A stretch of DNA of 64,000 nt. Origin: Epithemia pelagica (Eukaryota; Protista; Bacillariophyta). This document shows, piece after piece, positions 11,821 through 53,345 of the stretch. The notes beneath the pieces are model-generated. The model was not told the origin of the DNA. It saw only the letters and a list, made by a program, of their open reading frames with translations, and did no database searches. Positions within the stretch are counted from its first letter, which is position 1. The number at the start of each line of letters is the position of its first letter. The stretch covers positions 1,116,001-1,180,000 of the forward strand of contig OX337236.1 in assembly GCA_946965045.2 (NCBI GenBank), read 5' to 3'. The translations under genes were made by a program, and so were the position numbers.

Positions 11821-14800
11821 TTACGAAGGATGGTTGTTGTCACCCGTTGTGTTGGCAGTGGAATGGGAAGCGCTTTGTCGTTGGAAGGGGAAAAATTCTC
11901 GGAGATCACGTTGTCGTTGGGTCACCTGACCACTGTGGTCGGGGTGTGGTGGTCGGGTGGTTGGACGGCCTTGCCGATGAACCGGAAAGTGAGTGCGAAT
12001 ATCTGAAGTGTGTAGTCTAGTCTGGGAGGCTTGTCGCTTTTGTCCGCGGGCCACCACTGGACCTATGGTGGTAATCCAGTCTTGGAGTTCCGCGGTGGAG
12101 GACGTGGCGAGGCGTTGTTCGAGTGGTTGTGCAAACGGGGTGCGGTCATCATATAAAAGTTGCTCGCCTGCACGGTATAGTTGATGTACCATGTTTTCCA
12201 TCTGACGTCGAGTGTGAGGACTACCCTCATGGGTTTGGGCGTGGACACGTTGGTTGCGTTGCCTCCAGAGAGTGCTCCTGGCGAACCAAAGATGTGTAAT
12301 CATTGTGGGTCCCCACGGGGGAGGAGGTCGTTTTTGTTGCATAATGTGGGGGTTTGCCTCGAGGTAGTGTTCTTGTTGGATTCGCCACCCTTTCGGGATA
12401 AAACCCCGGAAGACAAGGATAGGCTGAATGTCGGTGAGATCGCCGTCGAGTGACTCATCTACTTCAATTTTGGGCGGGGTGTGTAGTAATTGCTCAAAAC
12501 ACTGGAGCATGTGTGTTTGAAGGGTGGGCTCAGTATAGAGGGTGGTCAAGCGTTCCTTCAGTTCGGTGAGGAAAGACGAGCGCCATTGGTCAGCGCTTCT
12601 GCATCTGTACAGGTGGTCTTGAGTTTCATCAAGAGGACAACACGGGCAGCATGGTGGCATCGGTTCATATTTTGCTAGGCGGACATTGGTGGGTAGCCAC
12701 CCCGCGAAAAGTTTCGCGAGGAAAGTTTGGGATATAGAAGCAGTATGGCATGCTTGTTCGAACGAAATCCAATCAATGCACTCGTGGGTTTGGTCTGTCC
12801 ACTGGAACTTATGTTGGAAATAGCGGGCCAAATTCTTCCCCGGGACAATCTTCCGGAGAACTTTGAGCTCGTCGCCGTTGTGGGGACCATACGCCTGGGT
12901 CGTGAGGCGAACCTTGGAATGGGGAAGCATCGGAAACCAAGGGCGAGGACCGGGCTTTTGGCGGTCGAGGGCTACCGTGGCCATTTCGTCTGCCAAGACG
13001 TTGAGCTGTGCCAATCTAGGGAGGAAGTTGAAGCTGACTTCCGCGTCCTGATGGCCTTTGACGTGTTCAAACTCGATGTAATACGGGAAACGCCGGAGAA
13101 CCGCAAAGATTTCAATAAATAAGTCAATATCGTTGCGCGTATAAACCGAAGAATACCACAATTCGCCGTAACTGCGGAGCTCGTTGAATCGCTGTATGAA
13201 ACTTAAACTGTCGGTATGCAGGACCCATTTTTGAATTGGGTTACCTACAAACCCATAATGACTGGTGGCATGTTGTAAGAAACAGAGAAGGCACCAAATG
13301 GACCACGCCTCCGCTCGGAAGGACGACATTGGCCAGCCGAGCACAGGGCCGTGGGCTTTGAGCCAGACCTCCTGATCGTTGCCGATGACCCATCCATAAG
13401 AGCCGAGGGGAGTCCGACATCCTCCGTCGCAGACACAATGCATCGATGGAAGGCGAAACGGTTGGTTCAAAGTCGTGAACAAATGTTGAAGGCCGTCACT
13501 GTTGGGAAGAAAATCCACGTGCCGGTGGAAAACCGGCCATCGATGAGTAAAACTCTCGAGTAGACCGTTTGGCGCCGCCGAGGGGATAAATTCGTAGATG
13601 TAGTCCAACGCTGGAGGTATTGCGCACAATCTGCGGGGCCAATCCACTCGGGTAGGAAAACAATTGGGGGGTAGCTCGGTTAAAGGAGTTGCTTTGACTG
13701 TAACGATGGTGCGGTCATAGAGGGCGGACCTAGCCCGGGCTGGTAAAGTAGGGTAGCGCAAGAAATTTTTGCCGGTGCCACGAAGCAAGATATGGTCGGT
13801 TTCGAATTCGAAGTAAGCTGGCCAGAGTTTTTCCGTGGCTTGGGGAAGCCATTTCTCTAATCGGTCCCGTAAAATGTCTGTGCGGCCATGTTTGCAATAT
13901 GTTGTTCTCAAGAAGCGACGGAAGAGAGCCCATTGCGCCTTTCCGGGGCATTGTTGGATTGGCCAAAGTTCCTTGTCCGGTTGGGAAATCGTAGAAGCGG
14001 TGCCGTCCAAGCAAGGAATGTAAAGTCGATCGCCCAAAAGGGTACAAACTTCCGACAAAAAACGAACTTTGAGGTACATCCTGCAATTGTTGATATGGAC
14101 CAAGTCAGATTTTTTCCATGGGCCCCGGCAGGCCTCTTCCATAAGGTTGGAATCGGCGACTCGATACGGCCGATGAGCGGGGAATTCGTCCTCCCTCAAT
14201 TCGAGTCGGGCATCACTGGCTATGAGAAAGTCGCGGGTTGTTTTGAACCAACCGTCTGGCAGGTAGAGAAGGTGCGGATCCACGTCTTGAAACGGGTGAA
14301 ACATGATCCCCGAAGACATATGGCCCCACTTGAGCAAGATGACCAAGGTGTTCCGGAGTATATTCGGAGGGCCCCGCAGTGTCGGCAAAAGTATAGAATG
14401 CAGATGTTGGCAGCCTTGCTCCACCCAAAAATGGGTAAGGCCAAGTCCGCCCACTTCGGTTGGAGCAAAACTTAGGGCAAGAGGAAACGTCCGGGGAAGG
14501 CCGAGAGCATTAAGAAGATAACCGGTTGAAGCACGATGAATACGTTGGCAATCCTTGTAACGGAGATGAGTACTTGGAAGGGAGTACGTGAGTGACGGAA
14601 GGAAAATGGAACTGTAAAATGTTCGGGCCGCGCGCCGACTGATTTTGGTAGACGCTAATGCGACTCCGAGCCTCCAGCCTTTCTTGATCAGGTGATTGAT
14701 TTCAGTAGTAGATGATCCGTTCGGGGCGACCATACAACCGAGGGTTCTTGTTGCCACGGAACAGTCTAGGTGACGAAGTTCGGTGGTCGTGGTGTCATCG

Positions 14801-17800
14801 CTATTCGTAAGGGACACAGAAATGCCCATGTCTTGTAATTGCTGGACCGATGCAGGACGTGGGAGACCAGTGGTGTCGAATGTCCAGTGTAATACGTATA
14901 GGAAGCATTTGCGGAATTCCAGCTGCCCTCCGGAATGCCAGAGGAGAGTCTCCCACCATTGTGCCATGGCCGTAGCTTCCTGGACCAACTGGAACAAGAA
15001 TTGTTGTGCCTTCGCCTCGGCATAAGGGTTGTGGGTGAAATAGTCAAGTGTCTCCTGGAACTTAGCGGAAGCATTGGCTACGTCGTCGACGAAACCTTGA
15101 AGGGCCTGTGCAATTTGGAGTTCGCGGTCAGGGGCGCATAAATCCACGCCTTTGAAATGTTTGGTCAAGGCGTCCATTATTTGGGAGCATTCAATGGCCC
15201 ACAGACAAGGTCCGGGTTGGCTGCCCTGACCGGGACCATGGAGGTCGTTGCCGTCGTCGCCATGGGAGTAGTGGCTGTCCGAAACTCCGAGCACCGTTTT
15301 GACATGATACTTTGCCTCGTCAAGAAATTTACCGAACGCTACCGCCGTCATCTCGGGCAGTCCCAAATGCATGCAACACGCGAGAGCGTAAGCCATCACG
15401 ATCCTGTCATAACAGGATTTCGCATCATTGTCAAATGTCACTAAGTCAGTGCGGGAGAAGGTGGCAATTTCATAAGTGAATTGCTTAAGGCAGACGCAGT
15501 CGATGGCTTTCTTGCCCTGTCGAGAACCCCATTGGCCTTCATGGAGCGCGCCGTGGGCTTCGCAGTGCGGCATGAGACGGCGAGACCACAAAATGCCTAA
15601 TCCGGCATTCCACAAGCCATCGAACAAATGGATCACGCGGAGTCGATCGATTTTTGGATCGCCCGGATCCTTCTCCAGCATTGTATTGTGAACCGTGAGC
15701 CAACGGTTGGCTACCTGGCCTGTCTTGAAGGAGGTGGTTAAGGCTCGTCCCATGATGTCGAAGATAAAGGAGCAGCTATTTTCGGCGGGAGCACTCATGG
15801 CCAAGGCGTCGTCATGGGTGAGGAATTGGTCTTCAATGGAGCGATCGGGGGCAGCACGTTCGGCGACAGGCTGGGCTGGGGTCGGACCACCGGTCGGTGG
15901 TGGTATACCTTCAATTCGTTCTTGCTTGGGGGGATCTAAGAGAAGGAGGCATTTGTAATGTCCAAGATGGACTCCGCTGGGGGACGTCGACGTCGATTCA
16001 CGCCACCGCTGGAATTTTTGGCTAAGGTCATGGCCTGTAATCGTATTGGAGATAAGCGGTAAATGGGGACCTTGCAGTTGATCCAACAAAGCTTTGGTGG
16101 CCGGGGAAACGTCGGGCAGAGCAAGTGCACGGTCGATTCCTTCGAGGCCATGGCATGCGTTTCGGCCCAAACAGTCGAGGACTGGTCCTGTGGTAAAAGG
16201 GCCGCGAGCTTGGCTAAAGTGGGTTAGGTTGCGCTCAATTAATCTTGGTCCCATGTGGTCTGGGTCGTGTAACCACTCGTAGTCTCCGGTTGCCTGGCCT
16301 GTAGTGGGGTCAATCTTGGGGACTTTGAGGGAAGCTAAACCCCCACCGGATTGGTGTTTCTTGAGCATTGTTCTGAATCGATAAAAGACGCGTTGCACAG
16401 ATTCCATTCCCAAAAGACCAGCCAAGACCGCCGCTTTCTTGTGGTGCAATACAGCGGCCCAGTATTCCGCACGCTCTTCTAGGAACTCTTCGCGTAGTAG
16501 GACTGCCTTCCGCTCGCATTCTGCTAGGTAGTGTTTTGCTTGTTTTAAATGACGGAGCACAATAGCACGAGATGTGGGCAACGAGAGAGACGGGGGTTCC
16601 CATTGTGCTTCCGAAGCTAATTGGGCGCGTTCGTTAGCAAAGGAACGACCGGTGCGAAGTTCCGAAATCCAAATCCTCCAATAACGCACTCGCCGTCTGG
16701 CATTGACTAATGTAGGTGACCATGGGTGGGAATGGTGGGCACCGCATTTCTGTTCGGCTGAGAGCATGCCTCTAGTGAGGTCCTCAACCAAACCGTTGAG
16801 TCGAGATGGAATCTGGGGGTTGTGGGGATCGTCGTTGGCCATCTGTTCCAATCGTTCAGATCGGGCGACCATGTTATGTTGAATGACATATTCAAGAACG
16901 TGTTTACGGTATTGCAAAGCATGCGCGATGCGATGGGAATGAAGTAATCGCGTTGCAGGTGTCGCCAATGGTGTCGGTTTGCCACCAAAGAATTGTTGCA
17001 TGTGGAGGTCGACGTAGAGGCCACGATGGTCCGAAGAAAACAACTCGTGGTACGCCGAAATGCCTGCACGGGCGGTGCAATGCGAGATAAGATGGGTGCC
17101 GAAAATGTAATCTAACCGTTTGTTGCCGCGTTGATACGTCCCTGGTGGGTGAGCATGTATCGCGGAGTGACGGAGTAGATGGAGATCGGTTAGCTTGCAG
17201 TCCTGGACGAAGCGGAGAAGCTGACTGTTGGGGTCATACATGCTTTCGTTGGCGTCGAGCATGAGGACAACTTCATATTCCTCGGATATTAACCGTTGAA
17301 TTTCCCGTTGGAGATCAGTAAAGAACTGACGTCGTGGATCGGGGGCCCTGTGAGGCTGCTGGGTCCGGAGAACGTGCCATTGCTGCATGTAGGCGGTACG
17401 GCCACCCGCTTGGCTGGCATTCTGGTTGCAAACGCGATACGCCGAAATCACCGCTAATTTGCTCTGGTGGCGCCCTCGTATGAGGAGTGTAGACCACCGG
17501 CCCATGTTCAAAGGATCGGATTGTCGACGGCATCTTGGTTGCCAAGGGCCGTGTGCCAAGGTGCAGGTACCGCCGGGTTGGTAGTAGGAGTTGTACCTTA
17601 CCGTAGACGACGCTGTAGCAATGGTGCATGGCTTGAGGACTTGATTGAATTGGCGATGAATCTCGTGTTGGACATTGTAGTTACGCCAGTCTATATTCGT
17701 TTCTGCCAAGCCCAAGATATCAATATCCGCGCCTTGCGCAGTGATGGCCATCGTTTGAACTTGACTGAAGCCATTGCCCGCTTTGATGCCGTTGATGTTT

Positions 17801-18615
17801 TGAAAGTACAATCGTATGTGGTCTGTTTGTTTGGGCAAGAGTGGATCGCCCCACGATTCATTGGACCGGTTATTTGGAGCGTACTGAGGAAAATCGTGGA
17901 GGCTGGATTGGATGATGAGTGGGGATGAGGGGTCGGGTGCTGGTGGTGGAGGTGGACTGGAAGTGGGATCGGTAATGGGAGGAATCCTAGCAGGGCTAAG
18001 ATTGTTTTGCCTTGGCCGTGGGGTCTGGTGCCGCAGGGGGTCGCTGCTCCTTGTCTGGTCCGTTGCGGCCTGTTCCAGAGGGTTGGAGCCGCTGGGGTGG
18101 GGGATTGGAGTGACCGTCGGTAGATCGGCCCGTGGTGCTGTTACCAGGACGGCGGGCCGTGGTATAGGGGTTGACGCTAATGGAACCTGGGCAGCGGAGA
18201 TTGTTGGAAGCCGGCTCAGCAGTAGCCCGAGGATCCCCGTTACTAGGAGTAGTGATTGATGGAGCGGCTGAGGGAGGAACCGACGGCGTCTGGATGGAGG
18301 GCGTCGATCTTGGTTGGTCAGAAGGAGCAGAGGCCGAGGGAAAAAGAGTGGTTGGTGCAGCAGGGGTGGTTTCAGTAGGACGGAGAGCTGGAACTGGTGG
18401 ATCCTCTGGCACGTGGATTGGGGATGAGTTGTCGAGGACATACTGAGTATCAGGGGAAAACGGAGGGCATGTCCGTTTGTGGGGCGGACTACGGGTTTCC
18501 GGATCGCTACCGGTTGCGGGTTCTCTTGGACGACTCGCGGAACGACTGGTAGTATCCGATGGTTGTGCATTGGTTGGGATGGACGGCGTGGACTGGTTGG
18601 TGGAGTTTGTAACAT
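11821..18615 (-). CDS. LINE ORF2: APE endonuclease, reverse transcriptase, RNase H, Cys/His finger; uninterrupted
   Basis: YFQNINGI, LAETN, LDANE, RLDYIF, SDHRG (APE); DNDAKSCYDRI, GPGQGS, GFVDD (RT); CDGG, SFRAE, TDS, HVKGHQD, NVLAD (RNase H); CPCC...ETQDHLYRC. Confidence 0.95.
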   Translation of the reverse strand: MLQTPPTSPRRPSQPMHNHRILPVVPRVVQENPQPVAIRKPVVRPTNGHALRFPLILSMSSTTHPQSTCQRIHQFQLSVLLKPPLLHQPLFFPRPLLLLTNQDRRPPSRRRRFLPQPLHQSLLLVTGILGLLLSRLPTISAAQVPLASTPIPRPAVLVTAPRADLPTVTPIPHPSGSNPLEQAATDQTRSSDPLRHQTPRPRQNNLSPARIPPITDPTSSPPPPPAPDPSSPLIIQSSLHDFPQYAPNNRSNESWGDPLLPKQTDHIRLYFQNINGIKAGNGFSQVQTMAITAQGADIDILGLAETNIDWRNYNVQHEIHRQFNQVLKPCTIATASSTVRYNSYYQPGGTCTLAHGPWQPRCRRQSDPLNMGRWSTLLIRGRHQSKLAVISAYRVCNQNASQAGGRTAYMQQWHVLRTQQPHRAPDPRRQFFTDLQREIQRLISEEYEVVLMLDANESMYDPNSQLLRFVQDCKLTDLHLLRHSAIHAHPPGTYQRGNKRLDYIFGTHLISHCTARAGISAYHELFSSDHRGLYVDLHMQQFFGGKPTPLATPATRLLHSHRIAHALQYRKHVLEYVIQHNMVARSERLEQMANDDPHNPQIPSRLNGLVEDLTRGMLSAEQKCGAHHSHPWSPTLVNARRRVRYWRIWISELRTGRSFANERAQLASEAQWEPPSLSLPTSRAIVLRHLKQAKHYLAECERKAVLLREEFLEERAEYWAAVLHHKKAAVLAGLLGMESVQRVFYRFRTMLKKHQSGGGLASLKVPKIDPTTGQATGDYEWLHDPDHMGPRLIERNLTHFSQARGPFTTGPVLDCLGRNACHGLEGIDRALALPDVSPATKALLDQLQGPHLPLISNTITGHDLSQKFQRWRESTSTSPSGVHLGHYKCLLLLDPPKQERIEGIPPPTGGPTPAQPVAERAAPDRSIEDQFLTHDDALAMSAPAENSCSFIFDIMGRALTTSFKTGQVANRWLTVHNTMLEKDPGDPKIDRLRVIHLFDGLWNAGLGILWSRRLMPHCEAHGALHEGQWGSRQGKKAIDCVCLKQFTYEIATFSRTDLVTFDNDAKSCYDRIVMAYALACCMHLGLPEMTAVAFGKFLDEAKYHVKTVLGVSDSHYSHGDDGNDLHGPGQGSQPGPCLWAIECSQIMDALTKHFKGVDLCAPDRELQIAQALQGFVDDVANASAKFQETLDYFTHNPYAEAKAQQFLFQLVQEATAMAQWWETLLWHSGGQLEFRKCFLYVLHWTFDTTGLPRPASVQQLQDMGISVSLTNSDDTTTTELRHLDCSVATRTLGCMVAPNGSSTTEINHLIKKGWRLGVALASTKISRRAARTFYSSIFLPSLTYSLPSTHLRYKDCQRIHRASTGYLLNALGLPRTFPLALSFAPTEVGGLGLTHFWVEQGCQHLHSILLPTLRGPPNILRNTLVILLKWGHMSSGIMFHPFQDVDPHLLYLPDGWFKTTRDFLIASDARLELREDEFPAHRPYRVADSNLMEEACRGPWKKSDLVHINNCRMYLKVRFLSEVCTLLGDRLYIPCLDGTASTISQPDKELWPIQQCPGKAQWALFRRFLRTTYCKHGRTDILRDRLEKWLPQATEKLWPAYFEFETDHILLRGTGKNFLRYPTLPARARSALYDRTIVTVKATPLTELPPNCFPTRVDWPRRLCAIPPALDYIYEFIPSAAPNGLLESFTHRWPVFHRHVDFLPNSDGLQHLFTTLNQPFRLPSMHCVCDGGCRTPLGSYGWVIGNDQEVWLKAHGPVLGWPMSSFRAEAWSIWCLLCFLQHATSHYGFVGNPIQKWVLHTDSLSFIQRFNELRSYGELWYSSVYTRNDIDLFIEIFAVLRRFPYYIEFEHVKGHQDAEVSFNFLPRLAQLNVLADEMATVALDRQKPGPRPWFPMLPHSKVRLTTQAYGPHNGDELKVLRKIVPGKNLARYFQHKFQWTDQTHECIDWISFEQACHTASISQTFLAKLFAGWLPTNVRLAKYEPMPPCCPCCPLDETQDHLYRCRSADQWRSSFLTELKERLTTLYTEPTLQTHMLQCFEQLLHTPPKIEVDESLDGDLTDIQPILVFRGFIPKGWRIQQEHYLEANPHIMQQKRPPPPWGPTMITHLWFARSTLWRQRNQRVHAQTHEGSPHTRRQMENMVHQLYRAGEQLLYDDRTPFAQPLEQRLATSSTAELQDWITTIGPVVARGQKRQASQTRLHTSDIRTHFPVHRQGRPTTRPPHPDHSGQVTQRQRDLREFFPFQRQSASHSTANTTGDNNHPS

Positions 18616-20623
18616 CGACGGGAGGACTGGGAAGAGGAGCTTGGGTAGTTGGAGGACTGGGAGTGATAGCTGAGGCCGAGGGCGAGGACTGGAGTCCCCG
18701 GATAAGAGACGCTAAATGTTCGAATTGGGCGTTAGATGTCTGGAGAAATTGGTTCAGAGCAGTCGATACTTGCTGCTGGGTTTCGCTCTGCTGGACTTGT
18801 GTTTGCTGGATGGTTTCTATTTGGGTTTGCAGCGTATCTTGTCTCGTAGAAAATTGCTGTTGGTTGTTGCACACCGTAGTGAGTTTGTCGTCTTGTTGGG
18901 AAGCCTTGGTCTTAAGGGACGAGAGGTCGGACTGGATCGACTCGGTTTTCTCAACTTGGGCCTGGAGTTGCTGGGCCAGTTTGTTTACCTTCTGCTCTAG
19001 GGCGGCGGTGACCGTTGTAGTTGCCGAAGTTAGTGCCGTCGACTGCGACGACGAAACCGTAAGAGCGTCCGCGTATGACACCTGTTTTTTAGTCTTGGAG
19101 GTTCGTCGTGACCGAGGGGGCGGAGGTGCCGTGGGATTCGACACCGGTTGCCACGGGTTCACCAACTCAGGGAAGGACTGCTGATCAATCATGACGCGCA
19201 CAGCTGGTTTGCGGGCGGTTGGACGAGGACGGCCTGTTGGCAAGGTCATGTTGAGGCCGGACGCTTCCATGAGAGTAGCACGGGCCTGGCGGTCGGAGCG
19301 GATGGTCCTTCGAAATGGTTGACGACATGGATCCTGAGCTTCCAGATTGGCAAAGACGTCCACGCTTCGATACAAAGCCACAAAATGATCATCGAACCAC
19401 TCACTGTTTGCCTGGAGGCAGTCATTATGGCAAATCAATTTCCAAGATCCCCAGCGGTTTTCTGGCTCCAGCGCCATAAAGCGGGGGGTATTCTTAGTGT
19501 CGTCTTGTAGTTGGCCTGGGAGGTATAACAACATGTTCCGCAATCAGACAGTAGAGGTAGTATCAGTAAAGCCTTCATAATTGTTCACGGTGTCAAGAGG
19601 CACTTGGCCGTCGAAGACGCGGCCAGCGGCGTTCTGGATCAGAATGTACGACGTAGATTGGACAAACGTATTTTGCTCCGCAACGCAAGCGCGGAAGTGA
19701 TCGGGGCTGTCGGAGCGGAGCTGGTAAGAAGCGAATTGTCCCAAGGACCAGATATCTTTCGATGTCACTCCGTCCAGAAGACAAAGAAACAAGTCAAGAT
19801 GTGCGCGAGAGCAGCGGAATTCAATGGCTTCAGCGGAGATGAATTTGGCTTGGGGTTTGGACGAAGCAGCTTGAGGATTCCTGGTGGAAGATCGTGCGTA
19901 GTAGGCCCGAACGTTCTGGATGCAAAGGTCAAATTTAGGCAATGCTTGCCCATACAGTTTATAAGGACGGACCGCGGCCACTTGATCCGGGGGCAATGTG
20001 CCTATGTCCAGGTCGTGAAGGTATGTTTCAAGAGCCATCTCGGCTCTCCAATGAAAGCCTTCCATCAATGTCCATTGCGGATGTCGGAGCGTAAAGACGC
20101 CAGCGGCCTGGATGTCAAGAGTATCCAGATTATGGTACGTGAGCCACGCGTCCGTGGAATGTAAAAACTGGAGAAACTGCTTGTTCTGTTTCATATTCTG
20201 AATAGAAAGGCCGAGAGTCTGGACTGTGATGACCATGTAGAACCGATACGCGCCGTGTTCGGGGCGATGGGACTTGGCGCCTTGAAAGTAGGTAGGGTAC
20301 GATAGTGGAGGCGGAACTTGGGACTGATTGGAAAAGTACTCGGACCCGTCGTTAGTGCAGAAATGAATCACATTGGGAAAGGCCTGAAGGGTTGTCGAGA
20401 CGAAGTTGCTATAAGCTTTGCCAGCATCGAAGGCAAGGTTCGTGTCATTGGGGAGGCGAATTTCGAGGCGCCAACGCGCCTGATACCATGGGGAACGGGG
20501 GCCAGATAGCAGAACCGGAGGGGCCGGTCCGGTATCAGCGTTCGGAGAGGGATTGGTAGGGTTAGTATCCATGCTTGAGTTGTTGGTTGGGGAATCGTCG
20601 GAGCCTTCCGTCGCTTCGGCCAT
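17996..20623 (-). pseudogene. LINE ORF1 (876 codons) with one in-frame TGA at 19544-19546
   Basis: ORFs 19544-20896 and 17996-19543 abut in frame; first ATG inside the element is 20623; Gln-rich coiled coil and Pro-rich C-terminus. Confidence 0.85.
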
Positions 20624-20720
20624 GGTCAGCAGTACAGTATCTACGTAGAATTCTACGTTACTAGTAGTTACCGTTGCTTTCCAAAACCGCGCGGTGCCGA
20701 AAAGTAAGACCAACAAAACA

Positions 20721-23700
20721 CTCTTGATAAAGAAGGACTCTCGTTTGCCCACATCTGTGACAAAGCCGACGCTCTGTACATGGATGCCATGAACCTCAAG
20801 AAATGGCCAGCTTCCACCCACAACAAAGACTCCAAGACACCTCCTGCAGCCTTTGCCAACCTCTCGGTAGTACAAGCCATGGCCCTTCGTCAGCACATGG
20901 GTGACACCCCCTTGTCGAAAGGAGCATGTCTAATTTGTGGCAGCTTCGACCACTGGGCGAAAGATTGTCCCCACAAAAGTTCCAAGCAAGCTTCCGGACC
21001 ACGCGCACACTCGCGCGGTGGCAGTCGCGGATCTTTCAACCAGAAACCCAAGGGAAACTCCAATCGCACCTCCAGAAGCAACAACAAGACAACCACCAAG
21101 TCAACCCCGGGATCCTCCGTCAACTGGAAGTACCAAGCACCCTCCCAAGGACAGTCCGAAACAAAGACAGTCGAAGGGAAAACTTGGTACTGGTGCGCCC
21201 ACTGCGGCCGATGGACCGGCACCCACTCCACGGCACAGCACTCGGATGACCACAAGGGGCACTCCAAGTCCAACAAGAAAACATCCAACCCCGGCGGAAT
21301 CGCAGCCCCTCAGGCAAACATGATCTCCCTAGATCTTGATGCTGGCGCCTGGGCAGCACGATTTCCTGTCCGAAACCTCATCTCAGTCGAAGATTTTGAC
21401 TCTGTCGCTCCTGACCAAACCCAAGACGACACCGACAGCATGCCATCCATCCCTGACTCGTTCTGGGACACGTTCTCCGCATCATCCGGCCCTGAAGATG
21501 ATGATGATAATGTGTCGATTGTTGTTTCAGAGGGAGAAGAACGTCAAAACACCACACAAAACGAGTCTCTTCTCAACAACACCGTTGAAACCACCGACAT
21601 GTTGTTGGATACGAGACCGGTTGATTGTTGCGACGACGCCGAATCCAACGATGCAAGCGATGAAAGCTCCGCAACCACAGAGCCGCCTCCACTGATTCCA
21701 CGCTTCCAAGACGACGAAGAAGAGGATTCAGACTTGGCCTCTCTGTTCAGGAACGTCGATTCCGACCAAACCGACGAATCGGTCGAACTCCCACCTCTCG
21801 TTCCACGACCAATCACACCCTATGGCCTTCATCAAGCTCCTGCAACATTTCGTCCCCTCATATTCATTGACCCCGACGACCTCTCAATCGCAGAATCATC
21901 GGACGAAGAAGAAGACAACGATCCAAACGCCCCAAACCGAGATTTGATGGCTCTTCCACCCAACATCCGACAAGCCTTCATCCAAGCTGCAACGGATGAA
22001 CTGCGCCGCGTCATGAACCTGCACCGCATTGTTCATCCACCAGAAGACTCCGACGACGAAGCTACCGAGACAGGTGACACCGCAAGCACCACCGACAACG
22101 ATGCAGCCGACGGAGAAAATGACCAAGACGATGAAGACGAAGATGACAAAGAGGAAGAAGATGAAGAAACCGACGACGACGACTCAAATGGAGACGCCGA
22201 CGACAAAGCAGATGACGACGATCACGATGATGACAACAACGACGGAGCCTGCCCACCTACGATGGCAAACGAAAGAAACAACGAGAGTGAGACAGATGAA
22301 GAACAAGATCCAGCACCCGAACCATCGGACATCGACTTTACCGTAGATAAAAATAAACTGAACCTCAATGCCAAAGTGGCAACCATCAACTCACCTTGGA
22401 AAGAGTACAACAACTCAAATGTCGGCGAAACTGAACGAACCGACGACACCTGGTATGACTTCTATGAAGCAACATTCACATTCGACAAGAATGAAGATCC
22501 ACAGAACACTGACATCCACACGAAAATTCCGTCAGACTGTCCAGTGAGTCAAGAACAAGACCAAAAGGAACGGCCCAACTTCCATGAACAAGACCAAGCA
22601 ACACCTGATAGGAAGATGCCGGCGATTCAAGACGATGAAGTATCCTCCATTGAGTGGGAAACGCCTCCCTGTGACAGTGCACCCTCGCCCAACAGCCTAG
22701 ATCTGTCGTTCATCACCCCAACACGACTCTTCCACGCGCCGGGCGAGCCCTCAGCCCCCAAGAAAGGTCCCTCCTCTCCCATTATTCCCTTCGCAACTCG
22801 TCAAAGGCAAATGATGGGAGAAGACGACCCGGCCATCCGTCAAGACCACATTGAGAGCCTAGTGGAGCACTTTATCCACACACACACGGCCTATCACAAA
22901 GAAGAAAATCCACGTTTGAAGATGACTTTAGAACAACAACTACCTTCTCTCCAACAGAAACTGAAGGAAGCACTAACCGCTCTCCAACTAGACGAGCAAG
23001 TGCACCACAGCCGTCTCAGCATGAAAACACCAAGTCTGAGCAGTACCTTGCACACAGCATGGGAGTTGGCCACCATCTCCGACTATGGTGCCATCATCAT
23101 CAAGCAGAACAAACAAGGACTCCCTGGTCATGCCATGGATATCACCATCAATCCAAATGACATTACCCCGGACTCCCACGACGAACATCTGACCAACCTG
23201 CCCAGCAAACCAGCCGCCCATGTAGCGACCACCAAGCTTACAACAAAACCGAAACGAAAGAAAAAGAAACCACTCCGTCTGAACCTTCCTTCTAATCCAA
23301 ATCGTCATCAATTCTTCCCACCACTGACTTCTACAAGAACACTGATGACAACCGTGAAGCAAGCCGCTCTCACCGGTTTGCTCGGCACTGGTTTGTTGTA
23401 TATTGGTCCACATCTGGCTCCAAGAAAGGCACTCCCATACCTCCTTTCCTGTTTTGGAGGCACAACAGCTGCCTTGCAGATTGTTCAGCCTTTGTCGCTT
23501 CCCTCCCACCCGCCCGTGGATTGTCTCACCCACAGGTTGATTGTTACATGTCTTCCACCCAACTCTGGCATGTCCTTGGTCCGCTCTGTTGGACGATGGC
23601 TGCGATCAGCACTCGGTCTCTGTACCACATCAGAGGGAGAATACCAACCAACCCATGCCATTGCTGTGGCACCGAAACCTCGCTCCCACCACGACCGACA

Positions 23701-45725: not shown

Positions 45726-47830
45726 AGGGAGCGTATTGTAGATCCGTTCATACGTGACAAATCACAGTCGATAAAGAGTTGTTGTAGCCCCTTGGTCGAA
45801 AAGGATGATTGACGTCCGTATTACATCACTGGGTTTATACTACCAGAGTAGTATTTGAGTGATACAATCCTATAATCGGCAATTTAGCTCTAGGCATGGA
45901 TGCCGTCGTTTGATTGTAATGCAACACCAGTACGAGCCAAAACACACAACAATATCAAGTCTGCCAATTCCGTGTTGCAAGTGAAGCGCGATTCATGAAG
46001 GGAGGTTGTGTATGTCTGCTCATGTTCATTGCCTCATTGCCAAAAGGATCACGAATCTCCAAATACTCCAGAGAGTTGAGATCTGTTCCATTACTCAAGC
46101 CTCCCGACAGCAAACATGCGATGGCCAATGACAGCACTAGCACAACAATGCCAAGGAATTGACCTCAGAGCTTCGTCTTTCTCCTCAGAAAATATGAAAA
46201 TGGACTTCGAACGATATGGACTGAATATTCTGGACCTTTCACACCAAAACCGGGCAACGACGGACGGACCTCTACGGCGGCGATTTCAATCATGGTATCC
46301 TTCAGTTCCAAAACCATCCACGAAAAAAACGCCACCCGCTGTCAATCCCATTTCGAGGGAAGCTGATCGCACATGGTTGTAGAAGCCCTCCGACCCTTCT
46401 ATCGAGATCACTTGAAATTAGCACCCACGATAGCAAAATCATCCACCCAACCTGGGGAAGCCACAAGAACAATCATATAGATGCAACTGGCGCAAATACC
46501 TCAGGGGAGACCGGGGCGCTTTGTCCACTCTTGAAGACCATCCCAATCAAGCAGGAAAGGCTTCTCGTACGTTTCCACCAATGATCTGTCTCTGGCCGAT
46601 TGCTGCGTCTCCTCTGTTTTTTCACTTCTTCTTCCACATTGGCTTGCACTCTATAGTTCCACATTGAGACTGAGACTTTTTGGTTCTCTCTCGGTGAGCT
46701 CATATGTATCAATCATAAGCCTCCTCACTGTGTGGCACGAGCAATGTCGCAACTCGACAACTCGTTGCGACAAAGTGTCATTGGTTATGGTAGAATGCTA
46801 GTTTCTTGCTCCATTTCGTAGCAGCATTGCAGTCCTCGTCCTTGTGGTTGTGGTGGTTGTGAATGCGGCTATATGGTTTTGTTTTGTTTTGGTTCGAGGA
46901 TGATTCGTGTATAGATTCATGGCAGCGTTTCGGGCTGGGTATCTCATCCTCACGTATTATTGTATATATTGTTTTGGGGACTATCATTCTCCCGTGGTAC
47001 CAAAAAAAGGACCATTCCTCTTGCGCAAATCATTCGTCCTGCCGGTTGGATGAGAGTGCTGTTCCGTATACTATTATATACTGTGAAGGGTGCACCGAGT
47101 GAGTGTGTCTGGAAGAATGACACCGTCACTCGATCATCATCATCATTCTTGACACAACCAACACACTGGAGACGTGTGCCAATGTGTGTGGGCCTTCGTT
47201 TTGTCCTTGTCGTTGTGGGTCGTCATGGTGATTAGACGACGAGAAAGGATGTGGATCTTCTGATCCGTGACACAGAGATGCGCGGTGTCGGGAGACCGGA
47301 TCGAGTGGCGAGTATACAATAGTCGCGAAAGTACTTCTGGGACTCGGGACTCGCATGCCAACCAGATGGACCATGGACGAGAAACTGTATAACACGGAGT
47401 GTATGAATGTGATGCGGACTGTACAAAGGCATCCAACCCTAGGCGTTGAGAAACCCACAAGAACTCCCACTGCAATGCCCCGGTCATCCCTATCCATAAT
47501 CCGTACTCCTACGAACATCCGTAGAACTACCTAGGTAGGTAGGTAAGTTACCGGTAATTACCGGGAGTCTATTCGGACCCAAGCGCCATGCACCTTGCTA
47601 AAAGAAATGATGTCGAAGCAAGAAACTTTCAATCCTAAATCCTAATGCCAAGTATAGCAAGTAATTCAAGTGATTTATACATTTATCTTGTCGCTGTTGT
47701 TTGTCCAATGACCTTCCGTCGAAAGAAAGGACCACTTTCATTCACCTCAGGTTTAAGAATCAAAGATAATTCATAGAATACTCTTCTAAGCAAGCAAGTC
47801 TGCGAATCTGGCACGCTGGTAAGATCTTCC

Positions 47831-47900
47831 TATGGTCGTCCAATGCATGCGGAGCGTACCCATTAAATGCATTTTCATTCACATCTGAATCATCACCATA
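47831..47900 (-). promoter_or_regulatory. Candidate SECIS element
   Basis: ATGA (47878-47875), helix AATGCAT/ATGCATT, unpaired AA (47864-47863), mini-stem, GGAC; outer helix TATGGT/ACCATA; 88-157 nt after the TAG. Confidence 0.5.
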
Positions 47901-47987
47901 CGTGTTGTCTCACAAATCTGTCTTTTTATTGGGCATCGCTCCTAAAGAAGAACAATGATAGTCAAAAGAAACCCCACAGAGTTTCTT

Positions 47988-48986
47988 CTACGGTGCCGTA
48001 GAGGGAATGTGGCCATCGTAGAGTGCATCAAAGGTGGATGCATGGGACGTGAACGCCTTCGCCAGTGCTTGTGCCACAGCATTCAGTTCCCGTTTGTCCA
48101 ACCGTCAGCAATCACTTCCGACCACGTTAGCTCCGTCAGTCGGTTCTGGCCCCAATACCTTACGACCCAAATCAAGAATGCGTTCATGGTCGTTGAAGTG
48201 TGAGGTGAGCGCCGAAAATTCCGACTTTTGGCCCGCCGACCCCGATGACTGATAGTATGCCTCGAGGAGCTTCTCTTCATGAGCAAAATGAGCTTCCAGC
48301 ACGTGCAAGGCCTCGCTCAAGGACTTTGTCGATGGGAACTGTAACAAGGCGTTGAGTTTTTCGGTGCATTCTTCGTGTTCATGGTCCATGCTGTCCACGC
48401 CCACTGAAGGAGGAGGCTCTACCTTGGACAGACTGTCATCATGTTTCTCTTCTGATGCATTTCTGTTATTATTTTCCGACTTTTGGGTGAGTTCTGAATT
48501 TCCGGGATTCGTTGGCCAAAGCATGGTAGCTAGCAATTCTTGAACATGTCGAAATGCGTCTTCTCCATACTGTAGAAAGGCTCTTGTTTTACGGCTTACA
48601 AAGCATCCATTTTGGTCCACCACAATGAAACCGGAACATCCCAATTGTCCATATCCCACAGGCATGTAAGGACGACCAGGGATGTAGGCATTTATGGCAT
48701 GCTCAAATTGAAACATGCGTTGAAACATATAGGCCGTTTGCCTGGACTCGACGCAAACACAGAGGAACTGAACTTGGTCTCGACCGTAGGCTTCCGCCCA
48801 AATCTCCATTTGTGCCGCACAAGGGCGGCACCCGCCTCATCCTCCGTCGTAGAAATGAATGACACTGGGTTTCTGGGCCGTCCGCAAAAAATGGCCGCTC
48901 GGAAAGAGTTCACTCTCCCGTCCGTTCGATTCGTTGATTACATGGACATAGAAGTCACCGACTGGCTCGCCCACCGAACTCGTCAT
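47988..48986 (-). CDS. Probable selenoprotein: thioredoxin/AhpC-like domain (UxxC) fused to hemerythrin, 332 aa, Sec at 50 and 294
   Basis: ATG 48986, in-frame TGA at 48839-48837 (HFYDGG-U-GGC) and 48107-48105 (GSDC-U-RL), TAG 47990-47988; the last hemerythrin ligand motif HxxxxD lies after the second TGA. Confidence 0.82.
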
Positions 48987-49619
48987 GGTAAGCCAGTGGG
49001 ATCAAAACAGCCCGGATTCCCACAAGTTATGAGGCAATGACCAGTTTCTCTGTCGTTTTGGTTTTGGAGCAATGGACAGGTCTCTCTTGGAGGGAAACAA
49101 AGAGCCTTTCGGAAACAAATAGCCACAACAAGTCTCGAGGCCATAAATCATGCGTGAAGCAGACAGACGTCATGGGTTTATGCGTAGACTCTCTAGAGCT
49201 AGGGCAGTAGGAGTAGCTTGAACGCTTGTTAATGACAATATGGAATTAGACGAGAGGATAACTAACTTGTACTCCTACTCCTAGTAGCTTGTGGATGGAT
49301 CGACCATGACAACGTTAACCTGTCTAGTCGACCTGACAATCTCACTTGTTTCGTCTTCGTGACGTTTTTACTGCGTTGAACAACAGCGATTTCTCGTTCA
49401 TTGCAGTCTTTAAACATGTTAAGGCTCAGACTAAGCGTAGTGACCGTGTGCCGTCTTTCGATGCAACGTTGTGACTATCATTAGACTAGGTAAATTAATA
49501 CTGTGCGCTATCGGATTAATCCTTCTAGAGTCATATTGTATTCCGACCTCCAATAGTCTCTCTCCAAAAGTCACGGACCTCCACCAGTCTCTCTCCAAAA
49601 GTCACTAAACCGGACTACG

Positions 49620-52013
49620 TCATTTCTTGACGTACTCCATAAACATGGCTCCAGTATCGGTATTTTGGAATCGCCGTTCTGCTTTGTATTTCTTTCCATC
49701 CAGAACATCGTCTACTGCTCCAGCGACATTGTGCACAATGCACCAGTCGAGAAATTGTCCTCTCGGGCCAAGTTCAACAACAACATCAAACGTTGGTTCA
49801 CTTCGACGTTGAGTCTTGGTCTTACTCACACTACCACCAGGTGGTCCACTTTCGCTGCCACGGTTCATCTTACGTTTCGCTTCCTCCTTCGCCATTTCAT
49901 CTCCCATGGTCACTGTCTCTAAACCTCCGATCAAACCATTTAGCTCCTTGTTCCCTATGAGCTTGCGCAGATCTCCATGTGCGCTAGCAATGATGCGCAC
50001 CCCTCGTTGTCGTACAGTACGAGCTGCCTCGACCTCCTTGGGTCGGCCAATCTCGTCAATTACCATACAGGATGGCGTATGATTCTGGACACATTCAACC
50101 ATTACTTTGCTCTGTTTTTCCAGAGATTCTACCATCATGCGGCGGGCCAAACCGATACTCTTGTGGGGCTGAACTCCATCACCACCAATCTCGTTCGACG
50201 TATCGACAACCACTACATTTTCTTCAACAGCAAGCAACCGAGTTACTTCGCGAACAACCGTTGTCTTACCAGAGCCCGGTACTCCAACAAACAGCATCGA
50301 TTTCGATGATCCGAGGACAATATCCATACTTCGTCCGATACGGATGGTCAATCCAGTAATTGAATTGTCACGAGCTCGCATCACAGAAAAACGGTGCATT
50401 TTCCCATTTAACCCAGCACGATTGTCGTGACCAATCTCACCGAGATGATCTATGACAGATTGAATATCTTCGTCCGTCGCTACAACGTATGGATCTGTGC
50501 AAAGAAATTGGCGTTTTCCAGATACCCAGCATTGAGGCCTTCGAGCGACATCAATTACGATGTCTCTAATGTTTGGGACATCTATCCATCTGTCATCATG
50601 TGTGTTACAGCTTGTTTCTTTCGTCGATCCATTCTTTGGAAACCTTTCTTGGAAACTGTCTGGTAGGACGTTGATAACGTCCTCGGTTTCACTTGCGACT
50701 ACGTGGACACTGCCAAAAACGCCTTTTGCCGGATTCTGGAGGCGTAGTAACTCTGCTGATACCATTCGGTAGTTTTGGGAGCGATCAAAACAAATCGAAC
50801 GTGATCCGTCGTTGGCCACGGCGCTACGGGCTCTTTCTTCAGAAGCCTTTTTGAGCAATGATAAATGAGCAAACGCTTCGTCGTCTTCTATCACTTTGAA
50901 CGCACGAACAAGACAGGATGCTTCCAATGCAGAATACTCGAGCTGGGAGCTCGGTAGCGGTCTTTTGGACCAGAAGTCGGAGCAGCCATCCATCCGACTG
51001 TGCATAAAGCCCTTCGAAGGATGTAAGGGGACTCCAAGCTTCTCCATTGCATAGTCGAAGCCTGCATTGAAACGGTCAAAGTGATGTTCCATGAACAGCT
51101 GAGTATCAAATACGTTAGTAAGGCGAACATAACCCAGAGTCTCAAGCGCAACGGCGTCTCTGTGAAGATCATGAACAACCTTGACAATGTGTCGGGACGT
51201 AAGCAATGGACGCAATGATTGGCAAAGAACACTCGCCCCGATAAGTTGGGCGTCAAACACATAAACCTTGGACGAGTGCCCAATTTGAACCAGTTCCAGC
51301 GATCCCGGAATTCCTTCACAATCAAGCGCCACGAACGAATGTACCCGGTATTCCGCAGAAAATATTGGGTTCGACCGCATGATCTCTTCCAGGATCTCGG
51401 CTGACTTTACATAGAGGCAGGTAGTCCCATCCGGTAGTTTCCATTTATCCTGACTGGAAAACTCCCACTCATCATGAGGTACGAGTTCAGGCGATGCTAT
51501 TGTTCTGGGAGTGCTTTCTGTAGCGATACCACGTGATGAAGAGTCCTTTGTTTTCTGCTTTGTCGTTCTATCAAGATCTCGAAGTCGATCGGTATTCCAC
51601 TCCAACAGGCCTTTGTTCACTGAGACATACCCGAAGTAAAGAATATCGGCAAGAAAAACTTCAAAATTGAAGTTTGCATGGAGTTCACTTAGCATCCTCC
51701 TAGTGGTACCTTGAAGTTCTTTCTTCTTTTCAGGGAGCGGAAGTCGGGCGTTGTTAAAGATGCAAAGAATCGATGTACGCATTGGCTCCTGTATCGGGTG
51801 GTCTTGGTTGGGCGAATGAGGGACAAGCGATACGCGCTCCCTATCACAGACAGAGAGCCGAGTGGATGTCTTCAGAATTGAAAGAATTTGGTTTCTTGCC
51901 TTTCGCGGCCCATTGCAAACGCCGAGCTGTTCCAAAGGCAGGGTTTCGCCTGCGTAGAAGAGAAATGTGACAACTTTTGCGATGACTGTTTCGTCATCGT
52001 CTATCTTTGCCAT
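49620..52013 (-). CDS. DnaQ-like 3'-5' exonuclease fused to a Ycf45/SpoIIIAA-like AAA ATPase
   Basis: ALDCEG, HDLHRD, VFDTQL, YSALE; GVPGSGKTT, VVDTSNEIGGDG, QNHTP, VIDEIGR, IIASAHG. Confidence 0.88.
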   Translation of the reverse strand: MAKIDDDETVIAKVVTFLFYAGETLPLEQLGVCNGPRKARNQILSILKTSTRLSVCDRERVSLVPHSPNQDHPIQEPMRTSILCIFNNARLPLPEKKKELQGTTRRMLSELHANFNFEVFLADILYFGYVSVNKGLLEWNTDRLRDLDRTTKQKTKDSSSRGIATESTPRTIASPELVPHDEWEFSSQDKWKLPDGTTCLYVKSAEILEEIMRSNPIFSAEYRVHSFVALDCEGIPGSLELVQIGHSSKVYVFDAQLIGASVLCQSLRPLLTSRHIVKVVHDLHRDAVALETLGYVRLTNVFDTQLFMEHHFDRFNAGFDYAMEKLGVPLHPSKGFMHSRMDGCSDFWSKRPLPSSQLEYSALEASCLVRAFKVIEDDEAFAHLSLLKKASEERARSAVANDGSRSICFDRSQNYRMVSAELLRLQNPAKGVFGSVHVVASETEDVINVLPDSFQERFPKNGSTKETSCNTHDDRWIDVPNIRDIVIDVARRPQCWVSGKRQFLCTDPYVVATDEDIQSVIDHLGEIGHDNRAGLNGKMHRFSVMRARDNSITGLTIRIGRSMDIVLGSSKSMLFVGVPGSGKTTVVREVTRLLAVEENVVVVDTSNEIGGDGVQPHKSIGLARRMMVESLEKQSKVMVECVQNHTPSCMVIDEIGRPKEVEAARTVRQRGVRIIASAHGDLRKLIGNKELNGLIGGLETVTMGDEMAKEEAKRKMNRGSESGPPGGSVSKTKTQRRSEPTFDVVVELGPRGQFLDWCIVHNVAGAVDDVLDGKKYKAERRFQNTDTGAMFMEYVKK

Positions 52014-53345
52014 GGTGGTTGCACTTACCCCTACTACAACAAAAATTGGATGAAGAGGAATACAGTCGGGGAAGTTTCACTTTCGCGGGGTCAGAATTTC
52101 AGGTGAAAATGTGATTGGACCAGGCGCCACCGTCAAGATGGGATAGGACGATGACGTATCTTGCAGATGAATGCAGCTAGCTAGTCCCCGATAAAATATC
52201 GCGCGGCTGGGCAGGACTTTGGATTCCAAATGACTGCGTAACATTTGCTAGAAGCATTTGAGTGTCACTGTTCACCTGTCTATTTGATAGATCTTTTCAA
52301 GGCAACGTGAAAAAGGCGCTCTCGTTTCACATCGCCAACCCGATTCGATATATTCAGCACCAACAGAGAAGGACCAAGATTTACCGTTATGCTCTGGTAG
52401 AAGCACCAAGATATCCTTTCCTGCTCCTTTGTGTCTTTTGCCTTTGAACGGAGCATACTAGCTGAGTATACTATAGTCCCTCTTCCCACAATAAAGATAG
52501 GCAGTAGCCCATGAATGAACCTGAAGTTGCTTGTGCGATTGTTCATCCTGATAGTCCTGCTCATTTACTTTGAATTCCATTTCCAAAGAGACGGACTCTC
52601 TTTTGTGGATCCATGCTCGGGATCAGTCTTCCACAAGTCCGATACCATGGTACTGAGCAAAGATTCCCTCTGTTGTTGGAGATCTGTTTCGTCTAGTACC
52701 AGTCTGTCATTGTAGGATGCCGAGTTTGTGTCTTGATTACCGTCACTATCATCGACAAACTGGAAGTGAACTTTTGCCGTCGTTGTCATACTGGTTCTAT
52801 CTTCTGTGTGGTTCATTGTCATTGTTCTGTTCCCGCCGTTTTCGAGATTTTGTAAAGCGCGACTCACTTTTCGCAAAGGCAGTCGCGGAGCTCTCCTACA
52901 TAAGTCTAAATTCTGGGGGTGACCCCTTATATGCTATCTGCTACTCGTACTACCTAAATTTTTGTTTAACGAGCCTCCCCCAGAGAGAACCCCTCGACCC
53001 CCCTCTGGAATCGGATTCCCGAGTCCCGAGGTACTTTCCACCCCATACTCCAAAGTCGATCCATATCCATACAGTAGTCGACCAATTCACACAAAAAAAC
53101 TTGCATGACAGAATCTGGAATCTCGAGACATGGCGAGATTTGCATCCAACCGAACACACGAACCCAGATCAAGGCATCAATACAGCCTCTCATCTTCGGC
53201 CGACTTCTGGAACAAGAACCGATCCTCCAAAGACATCACTGCAGACGGTTGGTCCCCTTGAATCAGTGGGACGCAACTGCTGTATCTCCTGCCCATCCAG
53301 TATTCAGTTGCTGGTGAGCCTCTCTTTGTCGGTCGAAGCAATCTC

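Follow-up and report, generated by a model that had tools for sequence, protein, structure and literature searches.

A predicted diatom selenoprotein of the algal "TlpA" family with a thioredoxin fold, a complete hemerythrin domain, and two candidate selenocysteines

Introduction

An algal selenoprotein named "TlpA", which carries a hemerythrin domain, was described by Jiang et al. (2020, BMC Genomics 21:699; PMC7539508). The multi-Sec proteins named in that paper are SELENOP, SELENOW, SELENOJ, and PDI_e, and TlpA is not among them (PMC7539508). Previously, Lobanov et al. (2007) reported one thioredoxin-like selenoprotein in Thalassiosira pseudonana (PMC2375036), and this protein with its thioredoxin fold is probably a member of the same family. 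In the literature searched, only Jiang et al. (2020) link an algal selenoprotein to hemerythrin, and a second Sec or tandem SECIS elements in the algal TlpA are nowhere mentioned in it, the authors' database aside.

Here, we analyse a gene located in a 64-kb stretch of the Epithemia pelagica genome (64,000 nucleotides, referred to below as the window). We infer that it belongs to the algal "TlpA" family, to which it is matched by description alone (a thioredoxin-like domain, Sec, and hemerythrin in algae). The sequence-only reading of this DNA had proposed a comparison with published algal selenoproteomes, and one of these already includes the family under the name of "TlpA" with hemerythrin (PMC7539508). 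Like our protein, the TlpA of Jiang et al. is a thioredoxin-like algal selenoprotein with a hemerythrin metal-binding domain that occurs mostly in the Sec form; unlike for our protein, neither a second Sec nor two SECIS elements are given in the text of the paper. The family is therefore known; what may be undescribed is its second Sec, together with the tandem SECIS elements.

A broader likeness is seen with selenoprotein P. There, too, an N-terminal TlpA-like thioredoxin fold bearing UxxC (PMC2397514) is followed by a C-terminal metal-binding part with further Sec residues, and the 3'UTR contains two SECIS elements. The C-terminal part of our protein is nevertheless different, being a folded hemerythrin with one Sec and not a Sec/His-rich tail. 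Homology to selenoprotein P was considered and rejected: no match to the Pfam SelP family was found at E ≤ 1, and the likeness is one of layout only.

Our main reading, to which we assign a probability of about 85%, is that a nuclear gene devoid of introns lies at this locus and encodes a predicted 332-residue selenoprotein of the algal "TlpA" family, in which two selenocysteines are distributed between a thioredoxin-fold domain and a complete hemerythrin domain. Comparative and structural evidence establishes the gene structure, the predicted recoding to Sec, and the two modelled folds.

Results

Gene structure and the two in-frame TGA codons

The features of the gene are collected in Table 1.

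Table 1. Predicted features of the gene and its 3'UTR, in positions of the window
Feature	Position	Strand	Description and basis
Full coding sequence	47988..48986	(-)	332 codons + TAG; predicted Sec50 + Sec294
Thioredoxin-fold domain, DsbE/TlpA/ResA type	48519..48968	(-)	~residues 7-156; structural matches of the model
TGA1, predicted Sec50	48837..48839	(-)	codon 50; opens the U-G-G-C-R-P-C motif (48819-48839)
Hemerythrin four-helix bundle	47991..48431	(-)	~residues 186-332; Pfam, profile and fold matches
TGA2, predicted Sec294	48105..48107	(-)	codon 294; helix 3-4 loop of hemerythrin, D-C-U-R (C293-U294)
True stop codon TAG	47988..47990	(-)	translation
SECIS-like element A	47823..47896	(-)	ATGA 47878-47875, GA 47840-47839; helix II AATGCAT/ATGCATT
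SECIS-like element B	47689..47759	(-)	ATGA 47741-47738, GA 47705-47704; MFE fold

Translation of the minus strand gives a single frame from the ATG to the TAG, in which the only internal stops are two TGA codons, just as the sequence-only reading had described it. The translation holds, in this order, IHFYDGG-U-GGCRPC, MDHEH, HFAHEE, and SHFNDHE before TGA2, then GSDC-U-RL and HASTFD. No intron is apparent in the 332-codon gene when it is aligned with its orthologues end to end, from VGDFYVH at the N-terminus to IPSTA at the C-terminus. The mechanically listed ORF of 234 aa (48105..48809) extends from the first Met after TGA1 up to TGA2.

The contigs of three sequencing runs (X1, X2, and X3) show no base difference from the window at either TGA and no joints, whereas assembly errors at the TGAs had been named earlier as a possible refutation; X2 and X3 are apparent DNA assemblies and possibly the assembly's own data, so their agreement with the window may not be an independent one. 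None of the contigs examined for mRNA origin ends in a poly(A) tail.

TGA is the stop codon of 6 of the 18 long ORFs in the window, and since it ends ordinary long ORFs there, the genetic code is standard. No tRNA genes were found within the 64-kb window. Both TGAs, together with the flanking coding sequence, are retained in dozens of orthologues at 30–60% identity, which places the two-TGA frame far beyond chance; the conservation over dozens of taxa also excludes a pseudogene.

Homologues and their database annotation

When the middle piece of the protein was used as a query, about 200 homologues were obtained, and the named ones are all from diatoms (Chaetoceros, Thalassiosira, Stephanocyclus, Odontella, Cyclotella, and Amphora). 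Among the matches listed, about 110 of 120 start at a Met just after the motif of the first Sec and end in a Cys-containing loop. These are the start and end of the protein called in the window, so the truncation at these two codons is shared by more than 100 homologues; the statement that standard annotation would truncate the gene at both ends thus holds well beyond the 234-aa protein of this locus. Several of the cut homologues are "complete" ORFs on MMETSP transcript assemblies. These ORFs stop at TGA2, and their mRNAs therefore keep at least TGA2; the ORF start is the Met after TGA1.

Eight longer database proteins carry Trp at both Sec positions, and this is the observation that would favour reading of the TGAs as Trp. 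A full explanation of this kind would have the TGAs decoded as Trp or through non-specific readthrough, or would treat the gene as a pseudogene or an artefact of assembly; in our view its probability is practically negligible. In the DNA of three of the Trp-containing proteins, every Trp codon is TGA at both sites, and the loci fail to give the stored proteins under standard stops. TGG was found at neither Sec site in any orthologue examined. The standard use of TGA as a stop in the window and the agreement of the three runs argue in the same direction. The stored Trp fits metagenome gene calling under a code with TGA as Trp and would then represent a systematic database artefact of selenoproteins.

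The full-length entries stored with Trp are P0004, P0005, P0007, P0012, P0035, P0054, P0060, P0062, and P0193 (loci L001–L004). Another kind of annotation was observed in the gene model P0130, which reads ...VIHFYDGG|VQFLCVCV... and is devoid of the stretch holding the first Sec motif; the likeliest explanation is that this stretch was taken out as an intron to dodge the TGA.

For database users, the gene and more than 100 public homologues are thus misannotated: some are kept as fragments of 220–250 residues that are deprived of the redox active site and of the last hemerythrin helix, and others with a spurious Trp at both Sec positions.

The first TGA and the thioredoxin-fold domain

The codon at the first Sec site (U1) was surveyed in 80 metagenome loci and in the other loci fetched, and the motif x-GGC[RW]PC could be located in 63 of them. 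The codon preceding GGC[R/W]PC is TGA in 62 of these 63 loci. In the only exception (L038), the upstream sequence is non-homologous, which suggests an intron or a frame boundary. Cys replaces U1 in the homologue P0174 (HG-C-GGSC). The pairing of TGA with Cys that had been proposed as a check for codons 50 and 294 is thus found at the first of these sites and, as described below, at the second one as well.

In the alignment of the family profile with thioredoxin (E 9.5e-5), U-G-G-C falls on C-G-P-C of thioredoxin 5g2z, which puts U on the first Cys of the motif and bears out the earlier placement of U1 at the first Cys position of the TlpA/thioredoxin CxxC. The fold was modelled with AF2 for the orthologue P0012, using an alignment of 126 sequences and Trp at the Sec sites (pLDDT 89, pTM 0.78). 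In this model, the first long helix begins right after the motif Cys, and residues 1–150 match proteins of the DsbE/CcmG/ResA/TlpA group over about 135 residues, namely 3gl3 (Z 15.9), ResA 2f9s (Z 13.5), and TlpA 1jfu (Z 12.6), as well as the selenoenzyme deiodinase (Z 13.9). The Foldseek matches of the model include Prx/TlpA/Sco proteins.

The domain search by HMM suggested in the sequence-only reading gave a divided result. The hemerythrin domain was recovered by Pfam above its cut-off (see below), while for the thioredoxin-like domain Pfam was negative: AhpC-TSA remained under its cut-off (13.8 bits vs. 26, E 0.057), and a search with the N-terminal piece of the window's protein gave no match. 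The thioredoxin-like domain is nevertheless matched by the profile and by the fold.

Our protein shares with the DsbE/CcmG/ResA/TlpA group the thioredoxin subtype and a redox motif at the CxxC position. It differs from this group in having a predicted Sec for the first Cys and an extra Cys three residues on (UGGCRPC), a Cys at the place where the cis-Pro loop is expected, and a fused hemerythrin, and also in the lack of a membrane anchor and of a signal peptide. In the alignment A1, three Cys residues are invariant. One lies in GQLGCSGF, another is the later of the two Cys in FLCVC, and the third follows the first His ligand of hemerythrin at a distance of 3 residues. In the alignment A2 of 126 sequences, only the GQLGCSGF Cys is invariant, and the other two are present in at least 90% of the sequences.

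This pattern of Cys residues raises the question of whether the cluster formed by U50, C53, C56, and C117 (in GQLGCSGF) could be a Sco-like metal site, so that the protein would serve as a chaperone or a store for iron or copper. Sco1/ScoI and the iron-uptake thioredoxin FetE occur among the structural matches, the Cys homologue P0174 has the Sco-like CxxxC spacing, C117 is invariant at the expected cis-Pro loop position, and the fusion partner is an iron-binding domain. The best structural matches, however, are the DsbE/TlpA/ResA reductases, and U-G-G-C is superimposed on the CGPC of thioredoxin. Moreover, the Sec of known selenoproteins is overwhelmingly catalytic and rarely a metal ligand. 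We therefore consider the metal site unlikely and retain a catalytic, thioredoxin-like role for the predicted Sec50.

The second TGA and the hemerythrin domain

The C-terminal half of the protein represents a hemerythrin, which is joined to the preceding thioredoxin fold through a low-complexity linker. Pfam PF01814 matches the middle piece of the window's protein with 26.2 bits (cut-off 25.3), and the family profile matches myohemerythrin 1a7d (E 5.5e-6). Residues 162–313 of the P0012 model match bacteriohemerythrin 4xpw (Z 14.0) and hemerythrin 1hmd (Z 13.9, 111 of 113 residues), and DcrH-Hr is matched, too. Since the match to hemerythrins spans all four helices, helix 4, which lies past TGA2, is integral to the bundle.

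All seven residues of the di-iron ligand set are present in the sequence: H204, H233/E237, H263/H267, and H315/D320, corresponding to H, HxxxE, HxxxH, and HxxxxD. The last pair lies past TGA2 and would be translated only upon readthrough of this codon. The first five ligands are invariant in the alignment A1, and the His and Asp of helix 4 are found in the sequences that keep the C-terminal tail. The 38 codons past TGA2 are conserved in every orthologue and include the peptide AFTSHASTFDALY. These data agree with the earlier proposal that the 38 codons supply helix 4 with its HxxxxD pair, and that the CU motif (C293-U294) is located in the helix 3–4 loop of a complete hemerythrin.

At the second Sec site (U2), TGA occurs in 45 related loci, from which 39 non-redundant loops were obtained. 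A Cys is usually located 0–14 residues upstream of U2, and His follows the Sec directly in 25 of the 39 loops, the general context being C-x(0-14)-U-[H/R/Q]. In six homologues (P0105, P0131 with S-C-H, P0148, P0183, P0193, and P0114), a loop Cys is found instead of U2. In a more distant subfamily with the motif YTG-U-GGCWPC, U1 is retained and U2 is absent.

It could be supposed that only TGA1 encodes Sec, and that TGA2 is a stop or a selenium-dependent switch, in which case the main product would be a protein of 293 residues with a three-helix hemerythrin incomplete in its ligands. Only 38 codons separate TGA2 from the end of the gene, four sequences (P0027, L041, L060, and L065) have neither Sec nor Cys in the helix 3–4 loop, and element B of the 3'UTR, considered in the next section, is a non-canonical SECIS. 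On the other side stand the conservation of the 38 downstream codons in every orthologue, with their HxxxxD pair and their folding as helix 4, and the maintenance of TGA2 as TGA in 45 loci with a loop Cys elsewhere. Termination at TGA2 as the main outcome is therefore very unlikely, and we prefer to read TGA2 as Sec294.

In comparison with hemerythrin, myohemerythrin, and bacteriohemerythrin (1hmd, 1a7d, 4xpw, and DcrH-Hr 2avk), the domain is alike in its four-helix bundle, its full ligand set, and the degree of structural match (Z about 14). It is unlike them in its helix 3–4 loop, which is long and variable and carries the Cys...Sec pair, in its fusion to a redox domain, and in the near-invariant Cys located 3 residues past the first His ligand (the last residue of MDHEHEEC in the window).

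SECIS-like elements in the 3'UTR

Two SECIS-like elements, A and B, follow the stop codon. The unconstrained MFE folds of both, and of two elements found in the 3'UTR of the closest orthologue (L085, 59% identity), consist of helix I and helix II, separated by an internal loop in which ATGA faces GA. Element A has an unpaired TTAA and then a mini-stem, as in form-2 SECIS. In element B, the apical loop is without a clear AA, and the 3' partner is ambiguous.

The sequences GTGAATGAAA (5' core) and TTGGAY (3' core) are common to all four elements (two in the window and two in L085), and the window pair reads GTGAATGAAA...TTGGAC. Helix II varies among the elements of the window and L085 and yet still pairs (AATGCAT/ATGCATT, AATGCAAA/TTTGCATT, and AATGGGAAC/GTTTCCGTT). 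This comparison with L085 speaks more strongly for the elements of the window than do the model scores given below. The combination GTGAATGAAA-N(20-50)-TTGGAY occurs twice in 64 kb, both times in this 3'UTR, against an expectation of 0, and among 87 loci the 10-mer GTGAATGAAA is present only in L085, also twice. Contigs of the marine metatranscriptome X5, which are 95–99% identical to the window, cover 47843–48016 and thereby the stop codon and element A. A variant of these contigs at 47873 (T>C, A>G in RNA) falls in helix II of element A and changes an A-U pair to G-U, so that pairing is maintained.

The family as a whole was analysed with a SECIS-type pattern composed of ATGA, a helix II in which 7 or more of 9 positions pair, GA, and a helix I. 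In 26.8 kb of the family 3'UTRs, this pattern gave 52 matches in the sense orientation vs. 0 in antisense, and looser settings gave 64–81 vs. 1–2. We also used the R1 and R2 models, which were seeded with five well-aligned SECIS candidates from orthologues and passed through one iteration; both are biased to the "GCAGAATGAC" subtype, and the window elements were reached by them only with the filters off. Under these conditions, element A is the best R2 match in 2.5 kb on both strands, although a weak one (47827–47890, 10.2 bits, E 0.19), and element B is the second best, also weak (47654–47753, 7.7 bits, E 0.68), with a 3' partner that differs from the one we favour. An alignment of 15 SECIS candidates with MAFFT was tried and discarded as structurally unusable, since the apical lengths vary.

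An Rfam scan of 47000–49500 at E ≤ 10 detected no SECIS, and none was detected in eight orthologous loci with clear candidates either; this negative result is uninformative, since Rfam also misses the clear candidates of the orthologues.

Many two-Sec members of the family, L085 and L086 among them, carry two or three SECIS-like elements in tandem. The covariance models indicated three tandem elements in L016 and L045 and two in L046–L048, L050, L007, L043, L054, and L055. At least two elements were counted in 15 of 32 two-Sec loci vs. 2 of 7 loci scored as having no U2, figures obtained with a crude detector on incomplete contigs and with no loop extractable for L032, which is one of the latter 2 loci.

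Most likely, both UGAs are recoded by the two tandem SECIS hairpins predicted in the 3'UTR.

Loose matches to the pattern are also present elsewhere in the window, at 52692–52752 (-), with helix II of 8 and helix I of 6 pairs, and at 5151–5247 (-), with a TTTGAATGAC core at 5247. Both may be due to chance, as the background of the scan is about 1 per 7 kb.

Discussion

The likeliest biochemical function that we infer for the protein is a selenol/thiol relay coupled to a di-iron O2/peroxide site. Sec50 would be the first residue of the U-G-G-C(-R-P-C) motif, an active site that occupies the CxxC position in a thioredoxin fold of the DsbE/TlpA type. The flexible C...U loop would form a selenenylsulfide and act as the electron shuttle that links the UGGC centre with the di-iron site, in a manner similar to the C-terminal GCUG arm of thioredoxin reductase. 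Such a relay would couple thiol substrates to O2/peroxide chemistry or to the re-reduction of met-hemerythrin. That the whole protein operates as an intramolecular redox relay, with the Sec/Cys loop connecting its UGGC and di-iron centres, is a tentative proposal drawn by analogy, and the odds stand rather against it. Alternatively, hemerythrin could act as a sensor of O2, iron, or NO that gates the oxidoreductase.

A related suggestion is that the second Sec in the hemerythrin loop and the tandem SECIS elements are both real and undescribed, and that the loop selenol would be a direct redox partner of the di-iron/O2 site; we give this suggestion a little less than an even chance. If it is true, a selenol would be placed beside a hemerythrin iron centre, making the domain the first hemerythrin to contain built-in selenium. 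The protein would also represent a protist parallel to the layout of selenoprotein P, in which a UxxC thioredoxin fold is combined with a distal Sec and with two SECIS elements. Should the second Sec and the paired SECIS prove to be undescribed, the gene would offer a simple system of two UGAs and two SECIS elements outside selenoprotein P, suited for studies of distal-UGA decoding.

The growth of diatoms is limited by both iron and selenium. In the predicted protein, selenium, thiol redox chemistry, and a di-iron site of the O2-binding type are joined in one diatom molecule.

Other features of the window

A second case of ORFs parted by a TGA was observed at 17996–20929 (-), where one TGA (19544–19546) splits a single reading frame into ORFs of 461 and 515 codons. 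This pair adjoins an ORF of 2296 codons at 11821–18711. An intron, a frame artefact, or a further recoding site could account for this arrangement.

The neighbour of the selenoprotein gene is an ORF of 797 aa at 49620–52013 (-), in which motifs resembling those of a 3'-5' exonuclease (DCEG...) and a P-loop (GVPGSGKTT) are recognised by eye, and for which TGA is the normal stop.
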